Positions 58,532 to 64,000 of a stretch of 64,000 nucleotides of DNA are shown piece by piece. A program made the translations under genes and the position numbers. Each line of letters opens with the position of its first letter. The stretch's first letter is position 1. Origin of the DNA: Ascoidea asiatica JCM 7603 (lineage: Eukaryota; Fungi; Ascomycota). The notes below the pieces were generated by a model. It made no database searches and was not told the DNA's origin. It saw only the letters and a list, made by a program, of their open reading frames with translations. The stretch lies in assembly GCA_001600695.1 (NCBI GenBank), contig BCKQ01000005.1:733620-797619 (forward strand). The letters are read 5' to 3'.

Positions 58532-60851
58532 AAATAATTTTAATTATAACTCATTGAATTTTAATTTTGATTTCTTTTGATAAATAATTAAAAATAAATG
58601 TTTTTTTTAGCTGATTATACAACATTATTTTTCTTTTGCTTTCAAAACCCAACGCACGTGACTAAAGACTATTTGATTTTTGAAATAATTTTAATGCTCA
58701 TAACCATTTCTGTATTGTTATTCTGACAATAATTTTAAGTATGTTTGCAACGTTGTTGGTAAAATAATTTGAAGTGTTTCACTTTCAGTTGAATAATGAA
58801 GAAAACGTTATTAAAGAACAGGAAATGCGTGAATTAATTATAAAAAACTGAGAAAAAAAAAACAAGGATTCAAGGCATAATTTATACGTTTAAAGTTACT
58901 TTAATTGTTTATGAGGAGGGCAATAATAATTTTGAAAAAAAAACACAATAAAAAAGTAAGATGGAAAGTAATGTTAAGCAAAAATAGAGATATCTTCATT
59001 CTTGAGAATATTATGGCTATGAAGTTAACATGATACATCATCCATCATACAAATATGGTGATATTATCAGTATTTTCAGTAATTATCAGTAATTTACTAG
59101 AAGTGAAATTCGATTAATATTATGTATCCTTTCTTATTACATTCCAAGCTCTCAAGGCAAATCAATGGTGAATTAATAAGATTACCGGGGTGTTACTGTG
59201 GAGGAAGCGTGATGATTTCCGACAAATCGCAACAAAATCCAGCAAGCCACAAAATTTTTGGGATTCAGATTTGTGATAAATAAACACTGAATAACGTAGG
59301 ATCACTGAATGAAAATGATATTTTAACAAAGATTACATTTATTCTAGACTAATCTTTCATTTTAACACTCCTGAAAAATAAATCAAAAAAAAAAAAATAT
59401 TCAAAATTGAGTTATTTACTTTAAAGCATGTAAATTATTAATAGTAAGTAGAGCGATAAACAAGCATTACATTTTACAAAAAAATACTCCAGAAATGGTA
59501 GTGTTCAGTTTTTAGGTATTTTTTTTCTTTCTCCCAATACTTGCCCTGTAAAAACAAAATATATTTGTGATGTAAAATTGAAACAATTTTAGCTAGAATT
59601 ACCCAAGCGGAAATAGAAATGGATTAGGAAATCAAAAAAGAATGAGTAAAATAAAAAAACTAGAATGTTCAACAATATCTGTTACTTCAACGCATTTCAA
59701 GTAGAAAAATTATAAATTCTCATTTCAATGAAACTTCAATAGGGCTTAATTTCAAATTGATATGTGTTTTATGAATTGCAGTTCCATTTCTTCTCGAGCA
59801 ATGCTTCTTGATGATTAACGTTAGCTGAACCAACGTTGTCGAGCAAGCGATGGAAAATGACAGGGACTGTGTGGAGGGTACCTGATGCTTGGCTTTTCTT
59901 TAATTCCCAGAAAATTACTGTTTCTGGATACTTTTTTTAAAATTTCTTCTTTTTTCGGACAATTCAAATTACTCAGGGTTTTAAACGTCCCGGGTAACCT
60001 CAGTGAAAAGAATGTTTTAACAATGTCTTTTTCTCAGCGGTGCCACTTTTTGCCTGGTTTTGTGGTTGGGCGCATCCCGCAGATCTGGCTCCAGATTCCT
60101 GTTTCCCACGGCTGCCCGGGAAACGGAAATACCTTAAAGGTCCTCACCAGATTCCCGAAATAATTTGAGAATCTTTAAATAAAAAGTCTCAGATTCCCAA
60201 TTCATTCAGGCTAGAGTATTGAATAGTAGACAGCTATTACACCAGTGATACATAACTAAAACATAACAAATACATATGGTACACCAGTTTTACACAACTA
60301 TGGAATAATGATGAATGAGGAAAAATAATTCTTTTGAAGAAGGGATCATAAAACGCCTCCAAGAATATGTTTTTGTCACTTTTTTATGTGTTTTCAGTGT
60401 TTTCAGCTTTTTTGGTGTGACCCATTTCTCATTCTGTTCTTTTTAGTCACACATAAATATTCCCTTGAATTAATTTATTCAATTGACGAAAAAAAAAAAA
60501 TATCATGAAAACTAGGAGAAGTCGTTCACTTCATTGAAATCTTAATGTTTACTGTTAATTTTAATTTTTTAACTACTATCATACGTACTTTTAGTTTTAC
60601 TTTTAGTTTAACTTTTTTTAAAACTTTACCAATTACTAATATACGTAATAATAAAAAAAAAATGTATATAAGTTAACTCATTCCCTCATTTTTTTAATTT
60701 ATTTTTCGTTTTTTTCTTTATCTTTTACAAATAATAATATATTAATTCTTTAAAATATTTAAATTACTTAAAACTTCTCTAATTATATCCAATTCTAATC
60801 CTTAGAAATTAATAACTAATAACTAATAATCAATCATAAACTCTTTTAATA

Positions 60852-61163
60852 ATGTCTGCTCCTGCTACTACTGTATGTATAATACCATCCCCTTCTTACA
60901 AAAAAAATAAAAACCTTAACCGATTCGAAAATACTAACATTTTCTTTTTCTTCTTTTTCTTTCAGGAAACTCCAAAACCTGTTGAAGCTCCAGCTGCTCC
61001 AGTTGCTGAACCAGTAACAGAAACTCCAGCTAAAGCTGTCGAAGAACCAGCAGCTACTGAAACTGAAACTCCAAAAACTACTGAAGAAACTCCAAAAAAA
61101 TTATCTCCATTTAAAAAATGTCTTGCTAAATTAAAGGCTTTAATAGCTAAAGTAGCTAAATAA
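60852..61163 (+). CDS. Small 72-aa A/E/P/T-rich protein with a C-terminal amphipathic helix (Zeo1-like architecture); exons 60852-60872, 60966-61163
   Basis: Consensus intron with GTATGT, TACTAAC (60932) and CAG; strongly biased codons (GCT, CCA, GAA, ACT). Confidence 0.8.
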   Translation: MSAPATTVCIIPSPSYKKNKNLNRFENTNIFFFFFFFQETPKPVEAPAAPVAEPVTETPAKAVEEPAATETETPKTTEETPKKLSPFKKCLAKLKALIAKVAK

Positions 61164-62195
61164 GTTTATACTTCAACTTAAGTATCTTTTGATATGAACA
61201 TTGAAACAAACTTACTTTAATCTTTTTTTTCTTGATATATTTTATTTTTCTGGTTTTTATATTCTTTAATTATTTTATTATTATTTTTTTTTTGGTTTGT
61301 TGTTTCTGATAATTTAAATATGCTTTAATTTAACTAATGTTTTTTTCTTTTACTAATTTTACTTTATTTTTTAAGAACTGTCTTTCAACTATTTTTACTT
61401 TTCTATTTTTTAATTTTTTTAATTTTTAGAAAGGTTCATAGTTTTGATGCTGATAATTTTTAAATTATCCTATTAATAACTAATATACTTAACCCCCTCT
61501 TTTTTCTCTTACCTAATCTTTTAAATAACCTTTTTTCAAATCCATTATAATTTAATATTTATAAATATATATTTATTTTTTTTTGCTTAATATCTCTAGT
61601 TTAATCAATCCCGAGTTTTAAGACAGTTTAATTTATTTATCTATTTAATTTTTAAATCATTTTGGTATTTTAATAAATATAATGTTCTATTTAATTTTAT
61701 TCTATTTCACTTTTACTTTTACTTTTACCTTTATTGAAGTGTTTATTGTAATCGAGGCTATAATATCTATTGGAATTGTATTAGTTTAACGTTAATAGAC
61801 GGTACCGTAATAAATAGATAGCCACCATCTAAAAGTTTAAATTATATAATTTTTAAATCTAGAAAGATAAAGGATTTTTTTTTTTTCTCTTATCTTCAAG
61901 TTTTGATTCAAATTCATTCACTAAAAACTCTTTATTATGTATTAGTTAACAAATTTGATTTACAATTAATGTTATTATTGTTATTTTGGTAAATTTGATC
62001 ATTCAAATTGAATCAAATTTTTATTAATTTAAATTTGTAAGATAACAAGAATAATTTATTTAACTGATTTAATGAACTTAAACATTTTCCGAGACAGATA
62101 CGTAATGTTATTGATATAAAAATGATTTAATATCTCCGATGGTCATTTCTAGCTAAGAGATTAGTGGCATATTATAGTGATTTTTAATCTCATGT

Positions 62196-62223
62196 TATCA
62201 TCATCATCATCATCATCATCATC
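62196..62223 (+). repeat. (ATC)n microsatellite
   Basis: About 9 copies. Confidence 0.85.
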
Positions 62224-62278
62224 TTTTCTTTTATATCTTCGTCTTATCATTTTTTTATTTTGACATTATATTCGTATC

Positions 62279-62589
62279 TATCCCTTTAATCCCAATTTTT
62301 GTGCTTTTTGTCGTAAAGCAATTTTGGGCTTTACGAGCACGTGTAAACCTGTGTAGAAAAAATTGAAATATTTATTAAAAATAAGTTATAACATTAATCC
62401 CGCATTAAGTAGGGATGTAGTAATACTGTTTACTCAAGTAGTTTACTTTAAAGCACGTGGTCTTTCAAAGATCCCGTTTAGTTTTTGTAGACAAATTTTA
62501 AATACCTACAGTGTTTGGTACTCACGTGCCTCGTTTAGCTGTTAAATTGCTTTACGACAAAAAGCACAAAAATTGGGATTAAAGGGATA
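62279..62589. repeat. Perfect 46-bp inverted repeat (62279-62324 / 62544-62589) with a 219-bp interior; MITE-like or invertible segment
   Basis: TATCCCTTTAATCCCAATTTTTGTGCTTTTTGTCGTAAAGCAATTT and its exact reverse complement. Confidence 0.92.
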
Positions 62590-62747
62590 CTTGCACCCTG
62601 TCCGGCACTAGAATTTGGCAAGATCCGTCCTAACTTTAACGGCCTCTCAGTCGCCAAGAACAAGGAAATTTTGGATCCGAGTATCCACGAAGAGCACGGA
62701 ACAGGCAGACACGATTTGCCACAAAACTGTCTTAGACAAAGCACGTG
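62338..62747. promoter_or_regulatory. Cluster of four CACGTG E-boxes (62338, 62454, 62523, 62742)
   Basis: Four copies in about 410 bp of AT-rich DNA; one is the Pho4-preferred GCACGTGG. Confidence 0.7.
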
Positions 62748-63626
62748 ATTCATATTATTGAAATCCCGGCCGAGGATTGTCAGACAAATATATTTAAAGG
62801 CATGTGACCAGAGTCAGGTGATTACCTTCAATCACCGCCTGACCTGGGTTAAGCCCAAATCTAGACCTCAGAGCCCTAGAGTGCTAATAGCCCTGCATAG
62901 GGAACTTCTTCTTCTAACAACAGCTACCACTGCTACCGCTGCTACAACTCTTTTCACCACAAGCAAAGTCAGATACTTACTGAAATGCACTGTATTTTAT
63001 TAACTCTCAATTATTATATCGATAATCAAACTATTATATTAAATTGAATCAACTATTATCTAATATTATTTTTTATATTATCCCACCATTACAATCTGTC
63101 AATTAACCTATTTATTTTGATTCATTTGATATAATATCATTATAATACTAATTACTAATAGTTGGTAGTAAATGTAAATGTAATCAGAAAACAATAATTT
63201 TCATCTTCATATATAAATTTAATTCATTACTTAATATATTCCCCCATAATTCATTTTACTCATTATATTACTTAATCATTCAATATAATCATTCAATATA
63301 ATTATTCAATATAATTTTTTCTTTTTGTTTTCAATTGACAAACAAAAAGAAAATAAAATCAATTTTCATTTATCGCATATTTTTTTGCTATAAAATATTT
63401 GTATAAACTACTAGCTATAAAATTAAAAAAAATCAATAAACTCAATAAAAAAATCTATTCATATTTTCAAAAATTCATCTATCTTATTCTTTTCATAATT
63501 TTAATTAAATATATTCTAATTTTATTTTCATTTATCCTAAATTATTTTTTTTTTAATTTACAATTTTCAATATAATTCTCATTATAATTTTTATCTTCGA
63601 ATTAATTTCTAAAAATCAATTTCAAA

Positions 63627-63686
63627 ATGTTTAATAACAGATCTGGTCCAACTTTATACAATGATCCTATCAATCTTCAACTTTTA

Positions 63687-63747
<61 letters not shown>

Positions 63748-63905
63748 CTTTTGGAACCTCCAATAACTCTTCTCTTCTTCCTAATCTTTTGAATTCAAAC
63801 ATTTCTACTCCTGCTCAAATTGCTGCAAGTCATTTAAATAAATTTGCCGCCAATTTTACCGCCCAACAACATACTAATAACAATAATAATAATAACAACA
63901 ACAAC

Positions 63906-64000
<95 letters not shown>
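63627..64000 (+). CDS. 5' end of a poly-Gln/poly-Asn protein (runs off the window)
   Basis: CAAAATG context; MFNNRSGPTLYNDPINLQLLQ(n)SFGTSNNSSLLPNLLNS...N(n); no stop before the window end. Confidence 0.7.

Follow-up and report, generated by a model that had tools for sequence, protein, structure and literature searches.

Targeting of TTAA with a 4-bp duplication is regarded as a hallmark of the entire piggyBac superfamily, and structural studies attribute it to transposase dimer geometry. In canonical piggyBac, the spacing of the active sites dictates a 4-bp offset, and in the T. ni element a palindromic 19-bp internal repeat lies beside the terminal repeat, where the C-terminal Cys-rich domain binds it as a dimer (PMC7351741). 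Among 157 piggyBac-like elements surveyed, non-TTAA flanks were seen in single copies only and were ascribed to mutation (PMC5381638). A survey of fungal cut-and-paste transposons restricts its piggyBac entries to Mucoromycota, Microsporidia and Pezizomycotina (PMC5751038), and in the literature searched we found no report of native piggyBac in Saccharomycotina or in Ascoidea (which is weak evidence of absence).

The locus described here carries a 311-bp unit that, like piggyBac-derived MITEs, appears to be a short, non-coding deletion derivative with both tips of transposase-bearing copies. The unit is very probably a MITE derived from a decayed piggyBac-like transposon, and its family appears to use TATA as the target, with duplication of AT alone. 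As in piggyBac (T. ni piggyBac being the type), a terminal repeat is accompanied by a subterminal palindromic repeat, and the subterminal parts differ between the two ends. Unlike piggyBac, the family to which the unit belongs is without TTAA; its TAT/ATA flanks and TATA empty sites point instead to a 2-bp AT duplication or to none. The long inverted repeats of the unit and its family (46 bp perfect, about 65 bp imperfect) and the budding-yeast host also set it apart. What is new is the TATA/AT insertion signature in an otherwise known type of element, the piggyBac-derived MITE.

The 311-bp unit and its copies

The window is the whole 64-kb stretch of DNA that was analysed (G000:C5:733620-797619), part of an assembly of 20.3 Mb in 71 contigs. 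By repeat scan and direct reading, two arms of 46 nt each (62279-62324 and 62544-62589) are 100% complementary, with 219 nt in between; a perfect inverted repeat of 46 bp is far above the chance level. The original prediction had described these exact reverse-complement arms with TA at their outer ends and a dyad at each inner end, at the coordinates listed below, and both approaches bear it out. Direct reading also agrees with it that perfect arm identity stops within the spacers of both dyads and that a weaker inverted similarity continues inward, where it reaches the CACGTG boxes. Three such boxes were said to lie in the 219-bp interior about 1 kb upstream of a Q/N gene, and they are indeed present, at 62338, 62454 and 62523, with the gene starting at 63627. 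The features of the unit are as follows.

62279-62589, minus strand: whole unit, one copy of MITE subfamily A, 311 bp (six full copies with the same boundaries and unrelated flanks)
62282-62586, no strand: element proper under the preferred reading, CCC...GGG, 305 bp (from the net insert at empty sites, which is the unit minus 4 nt, and from the C-starting tips)
62279-62281, no strand: left flank TAT, read as the T of the TATA target plus the left AT copy (62280-62281, a presumed duplication); family ends read TAT then CCC, and empty sites TATA or TACA
62587-62589, no strand: right flank ATA, read on the same basis as the right AT copy (62587-62588, a presumed duplication) plus the A of the TATA target
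62279-62324, plus strand: left perfect terminal inverted repeat, 46 bp, with imperfect inverted similarity on to about 62343 (repeat scan, end alignment)
62544-62589, minus strand: right perfect terminal inverted repeat, 46 bp, with imperfect inverted similarity inward to about 62523 (repeat scan, end alignment)
62311-62336, no strand: left subterminal dyad, 9-bp arms, 8-nt spacer, 9/9 complementary; TCGTAAAGC (62311-62319), then GCTTTACGA (62328-62336)
62531-62557, no strand: right subterminal dyad, 9-bp arms, 9-nt spacer, 7/9 complementary; TCGTTTAGC (62531-62539), then GCTTTACGA (62549-62557)
62338-62343, no strand: left CACGTG box, about 60 nt from the left tip (the parent's 3' end), within the extended inverted repeat
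62523-62528, no strand: right CACGTG box, 62 nt from the right tip (the parent's 5' end)
62454-62459, no strand: third CACGTG box, in the parent's 5'-end segment, where the unit aligns with the C15 fragment

At 311 bp the unit is well within the usual size of a MITE (under about 800 bp), and it is non-coding: the sole frame of 60 aa or more inside it begins with TTG. Comparison with the long copies of the family shows that the sense of the parent transposase at the unit runs from right to left in the window.

A search of the genome with window positions 62200-62680 as the query, followed by comparison of the copies using local BLAST and alignment, yields matches that begin and end exactly at the boundaries of the unit. 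Subfamily A has at least six full copies in the 20.3-Mb genome, which are 85.6-100% identical and have exact shared ends and unrelated flanks. This multi-copy result is the one by which the original prediction had proposed to recognize a MITE; as a terminal-inverted-repeat element with exact ends the unit is typical of MITEs, and its copy number is low for one. Besides the window copy, the following members are present.

C4:1465080: full copy, 99.4% identity to the window copy
C5:576977: full copy, 97.7% identity to the window copy
C46:7064: full copy, 97.1% identity to the window copy
C2:1966997: full copy, 94.3% identity to the window copy
C1:1971087: full copy, 85.6% identity to the window copy
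C15:332103 and C10:32144: two one-ended fragments
C13 (twice), C41 and C32: sister subfamily B, 206-208 bp

A further fragment, C28:1-139, is the C46 locus again, since the contig ends overlap. Several stretches are duplicated at about 100% identity (G000:C28:1-1642 with C46:5562-7202, C41 with C32, and C29 with C32); these are assembly overlaps or haplotigs, and thus raw copy counts exceed independent insertions. The two subfamily-B copies on C13 (G000:C13:91751-91961 and 111395-111605) are inverted with respect to each other, lie about 19.6 kb apart and have identical flanks.

All well-preserved ends of the family read TATCCC...GGGATA. Perfect 46-bp arms are found in four of the six full copies, and a fifth matches at 45/46. 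The original prediction had taken the perfect arms around a diverged core as a sign either of ongoing inversion or homogenization or of a MITE with transcription-factor sites. The first of these views is not supported; the perfection of the arms in the window copy instead reflects recent transposition of a master copy, because arms are perfect or nearly so in five of the six, and the core appears diverged because the 5' and 3' subterminal regions of the parent differ and are conserved as such across copies.

An alignment of 100 nt from each of 23 ends reveals a common series of blocks: TATCCCTTTAAT at the tip; about 7 variable nt followed by TTTGTGCTTTTTGTCGTAAAGC; a spacer of 8-9 nt; and GCTTTACGAG(G)CACGTG. 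These blocks occur at both tips of subfamilies A and B and also in the long copies. In most family ends the outer arm of the dyad begins at nt 33 from the tip, and its partner lies 8-9 nt inward with 6-9 of 9 positions matching (by chance, at least 6 matches are expected in 12% of trials and at least 7 in 2%). CACGTG is found 62 nt from the tip in 10/10 of the A- and B-type ends that correspond to the parent's 5' side, the long C4 copy included, and is missing at this position from a diverged relic on C13; on the parent's 3' side it is retained in 7/11 ends, including that of a long copy on C20. The third box is kept in five of the six subfamily-A copies and has become CACTTG in the oldest. 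(The long copies also contain compensatory changes, AAACC with GGTT, that keep the dyad symmetry, an observation that is suggestive only.) On these alignments, the dyads and the CACGTG boxes are features of the family and are not specific to the window locus. The idea of a MITE that carries sites resembling those of transcription factors is to that extent upheld: the boxes are present throughout the family, with binding by a protein putative. Given the bound palindromic repeat of T. ni piggyBac, the most likely role of the dyads, and of the CACGTG boxes that lie about 60 nt from the two tips, is to bind the transposase, a dimer of which would occupy the dyad (9-bp arms, 8-9-nt spacer).

Transposase-bearing relatives

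A search with the tip pattern finds two tips on C4 that are separated by 3.8 kb (locus L021, 1681-5509). Here tips of the family type surround homologous transposase remains, and the interior is homologous to sequence beside partial MITE matches on C29 and C32. At the C29 locus (L023) the transposase frames, which are broken, have piggyBac hallmarks that include a Cys-rich C-terminus; they stop 30 bp before a 122-bp MITE-like end that finishes in the family tip. The window unit can be aligned with both ends of such a parent.

62279-62401, minus strand: segment homologous to the parent's 3' end; unit positions 1-123 are 85% identical to L023 5584-5705 (C29)
62430-62589, minus strand: segment homologous to the parent's 5' end; unit positions 152-309 match the one-ended fragment C15:332103 with 89% identity

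The 3.8-kb C4 copy, which retains both ends, also aligns here: its transposase-upstream end and unit positions 195-311 share 71% identity.

The transposase remains are recognized by the Pfam model DDE_Tnp_1_7 (PF13843), with E=3.3e-15 on C29:74056-74589, a match that is above the family cut-off and has stops inside; weaker matches lie on C15, C32 and C13. The best of these matches, at 59 bits, is modest, which suggests that the family is a distant member of piggyBac. At the Cys-rich end of the parent the match to zf-Tnp_2 is weak (E=0.036). A 183-aa C-terminal piece has as its best match, among 1.84 billion representative proteins, a protein of 605 aa (38% identity, E=1.8e-14), which itself matches DDE_Tnp_1_7 with E=3.8e-85. 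The nearest intact relative (P0001) lies on a 2,082-bp contig without recognizable ends. By these comparisons, the relatives of the unit appear to combine a DDE_Tnp_1_7 transposase with a Cys-rich domain, as the piggyBac superfamily does; the parent is thus like piggyBac both in this C-terminal Cys-rich finger and in the family tips, which start CCCT.... The unit also appears to have its ends in common with these transposase-bearing relatives, as MITEs do, all of the relatives found being pseudogenes.

No intact transposase was found in the genome, and every copy seen is broken. Mobilization by a piggyBac-like enzyme is argued from the shared ends, and with all of the transposase copies broken the family is probably immobile today. 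An internal deletion of a divergent piggyBac-like element would have produced an inert, non-autonomous MITE that kept about 123 bp from the 3' end and about 120-160 bp from the 5' end, and whose cut-and-paste movement in trans would have depended on the transposase of the parent.

The long copies have themselves been invaded. The C29 copy contains an LTR retrotransposon within its 5' part, and its second (5') end is absent within 20 kb upstream; frames resembling LTR-retrotransposon pol can be read from the translations upstream of the transposase remains (G000:C29:70948-73334; L023 949-3335). The 3.8-kb C4 copy has two nested repeats, one of about 1.1 kb with at least 10 copies (G000:C4:1478222-1479310; L021 1723-2811) and one of about 190 bp with at least 20 copies at 73-84% identity (G000:C4:1481099-1481288; L021 4600-4789).

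Target site and proposed duplication

TTAA flanks none of the family copies, and direct repeats of 3, 4 or 8 bp are absent from the insertion flanks in any register. The flanks TAT and ATA are consistent at a dozen or so independent ends. Empty sites are available for two independent insertions in the form of paralogues, which are 78-88% identical to the filled loci and are neither alleles nor orthologues. One insertion is a subfamily-B copy (C41:25973-26180) that lies within a repeat, and paralogues of this repeat on C4, C6, C26 (two), C3 and C2 are without it. The filled site reads ...AAATCTT TAT[CCC...GGG]ATA AGAAGAATTG; five of the six empty sites read ...AGTCTT TATA AGAA(T/C)AATTG, with both sides in register, and the sixth (on C2) is more diverged and departs slightly. 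The other insertion is the C1 copy, whose flanks are contiguous in C41:34181-35193 and in its duplicate on C32. Here the filled site is ...CCATTTA TAT[..]GTA GGCCCC and the empty site ...CCAATTA TACA GGTCCG, again in register, with one substitution. Flank searches of the genome gave no paralogous empty sites for the C46/C28, C2, C4 and C5:576977 copies, and the flanks of the window copy (about 80-90 bp on each side) have no second copy in the genome.

Since the empty sites are TATA or TACA, the net insert is 4 nt shorter than the TA-to-TA unit. Duplication of TA predicts a single TA at the empty site and is rejected by the four bases (TATA/TACA) found there; duplication of TTAA or of any other 4 bp is ruled out by the size of the net insert. 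The family therefore appears to be without the TTAA target and the 4-bp duplication of piggyBac.

Two readings fit the sequences equally well. In one, the element is CCC...GGG and a 2-bp AT is duplicated within TATA; in the other, the element is TCCC...GGGA, inserted in the middle of TATA with a 0-bp duplication. We prefer the CCC...GGG reading because DDE transposases integrate with staggered cuts, because the conserved cytosine of piggyBac-like elements (PMC5381638) would then come first in the tips, and because AT is self-complementary, so that seamless excision could be kept. If the element begins at CCC (62282), the unit would thus have the conserved first cytosine of piggyBac. In the CCC...GGG reading, integration at TATA with a 2-bp stagger would duplicate AT and give TAT[CCC...GGG]ATA, and excision could still be seamless with AT, as TTAA permits in canonical piggyBac. 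An offset of 2 bp is unexpected, since the canonical piggyBac structure dictates one of 4 bp (PMC7351741).

The chances appear about even that the family represents a natural piggyBac lineage without the TTAA rule, using TATA with a 2-bp stagger and duplication of AT, and that this lineage has seeded budding-yeast MITEs with CACGTG blocks, three of these boxes lying upstream of a CAF40/Rcd1 homologue. A possible parallel is found in ciliates. Paramecium PiggyMac is a domesticated piggyBac transposase that excises sequences at TA boundaries. Like the enzyme proposed here, it is of the piggyBac family and acts at self-complementary dinucleotide boundaries instead of TTAA; unlike it, PiggyMac serves a domesticated, excision-only process with TA boundaries, whereas the yeast family is mobile and inserts at TATA. 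If the proposal is true, the consistent use of TATA/AT implies that piggyBac geometry or target read-out can change in nature, which would be relevant to the evolution of piggyBac enzymes, to the TA-acting enzymes of ciliates and to engineered piggyBac tools with other targets. Budding yeasts have very few known DNA transposons, and the family would extend these to piggyBac and its MITEs.

Two features of the target stand beside these results. Four of the six subfamily-A insertions lie within the same hexamer, CTATAC (or its complement GTATAG), in what is a small sample. The bases beside TATA are mirror-identical instead of palindromic, an odd arrangement if the transposase dimer is symmetric, the sample again being small.

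Genomic context and alternative explanations

The unit is located within a 2.4-kb intergenic region, with a 103-aa gene (60852-61163) on its left and the Q/N-rich gene, from 63627 onward, on its right. There are no frames of 100 aa or more between 61164 and 63626, and an Rfam search of window 60500-64000 returned no match at E up to 1. The Q/N-rich gene has an Rcd1/CAF40 domain (E=6e-117); it (L066 47-1972) is a homologue of CAF40/Rcd1, a CCR4-NOT subunit, with an N-terminal extension of about 375 aa that is rich in Q and N. Elsewhere in the window, a Van1 homologue has its best match in Ascoidea rubescens (76% identity), followed by matches from other budding yeasts. When assemblies were searched with the product of the upstream 103-aa gene, the locus did not turn up in a second one. 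Two samples from two studies yielded contigs that contain 93-98% of the sampled words of the locus.

CACGTG is the type of site used by yeast bHLH factors of the Cbf1/Pho4 class, and the 64-kb window contains 9 of them, compared with about 1 expected from shuffles. The MITE origin is compatible with co-option, in which the element supplied three of the four CACGTG boxes upstream of the CAF40/Rcd1 homologue and has come to contribute to the regulation of that gene. With about 1 kb between it and the ATG at 63627, the unit stands in front of a gene whose product has the Rcd1 domain, and its three boxes are joined by a fourth at 62742-62747, outside the unit and 153 bp to its right, a cluster that favors this idea given that about 1 box is expected in the whole window. 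However, the boxes are found family-wide at every locus, including copies downstream of convergent genes, so that a host function is unneeded to account for them. All family copies are intergenic in varied arrangements, and those that lie downstream of two convergent genes argue against a consistent promoter link. Moreover, the CAF40/Rcd1 homologue is neither a phosphate gene nor a bHLH gene, and the parent's sense direction is leftward, such that its promoter side would fire away from the homologue. Co-option is consequently unlikely. For annotation of the genome, what looks like a promoter with four E-boxes upstream of the CAF40 homologue is three-quarters transposon-borne.

The remaining explanations concern the nature of the unit itself. 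A Stowaway-like MITE of the Tc1/mariner type, which inserts at TA and duplicates it, would resemble the unit in being small, with inverted ends, TA on the outside and probably a 2-bp stagger on integration; TA is present at both outer ends of each well-preserved copy, and the genome contains transposase remains of pogo-type DDE_1 and of DDE_3. Yet the empty sites have four bases (TATA/TACA) and not a single TA; the duplicated dinucleotide would be AT inside TATA rather than TA; the ends are common to copies with a piggyBac-type transposase; and no match to the tip pattern coincides with any DDE_1 or DDE_3 place in the genome. The original prediction, which saw in the unit a TA-flanked Tc1/mariner-type MITE, is therefore correct about the MITE (at least six copies with exact ends), but the superfamily is very unlikely to be the one it named, in view of the piggyBac-like parent and the TATA/TACA empty sites. 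It had also raised an invertible promoter cassette, in which the 219-bp core flips between the 46-bp arms and the dyads are sites for a tyrosine recombinase. Like Flp/FRT- or fim-type switches, the unit has inverted repeats around a short core and dyads of an arm-spacer-arm layout, and any 46-bp inverted repeat can recombine on occasion. Against this, the same structure occurs at six or more unrelated loci and in transposase-bearing copies, several copies are away from promoters, and the arms are perfect or near-perfect in five of the six full copies. Unlike the switches, the unit is multi-copy, mobile and without an associated recombinase (the lack of any frame of 100 aa or more from 61164 to 63626 leaves no room for an adjoining recombinase gene); its dyads belong to the conserved subterminal blocks of a transposon and keep a constant spacing from the tip in subfamilies A and B as well as in the long copies. 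The dyad spacers are also unlike in length (8 and 9 nt) and in sequence, a difference that the original prediction had itself held against a canonical Flp-like site. A recombinase switch is accordingly highly improbable. Finally, a chimeric or fold-back join made during assembly has nothing specific in its favor, apart from the contig ends of C28 and C46 that overlap at another copy; with copies inside long contigs at six loci, and with most of the sampled words of the locus present in contigs from the two studies mentioned above, an artefact of this kind is barely conceivable.

Several other features were observed near the copies or elsewhere in the genome. A GC-rich island (62590-62990, about 45% G+C compared with about 20% around it) abuts the right end of the MITE and contains the CACGTG box at 62742. 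It is single-copy in the genome, lacks a long frame and is not matched by any Rfam family; it could represent a promoter module or else an RNA gene that has yet to be described. Pogo-type DDE_1 domains are found in stop-free frames of 1009-1245 aa (G000:C1:1077310-1077711, C5:830051-830662, C2:237288-237626 and C5:212440-212736), possibly pogo/CENP-B-like genes that are either domesticated or active. At C4:1465535-1465610 (L002 1956-2031) there is a unit of about 76 bp with at least 30 matches, 75-87% identical and some of them in tandem, and neither ARAGORN nor Rfam calls it a tRNA. ARAGORN found no tRNA in any of 17 loci, and it missed a 119-nt intron-containing tRNA gene at C2:1967392-1967510 (L005 1896-2014) that Rfam scores at 43 bits. 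This tRNA gene is 82 bp from the C2 copy of the MITE, which lies upstream of it.
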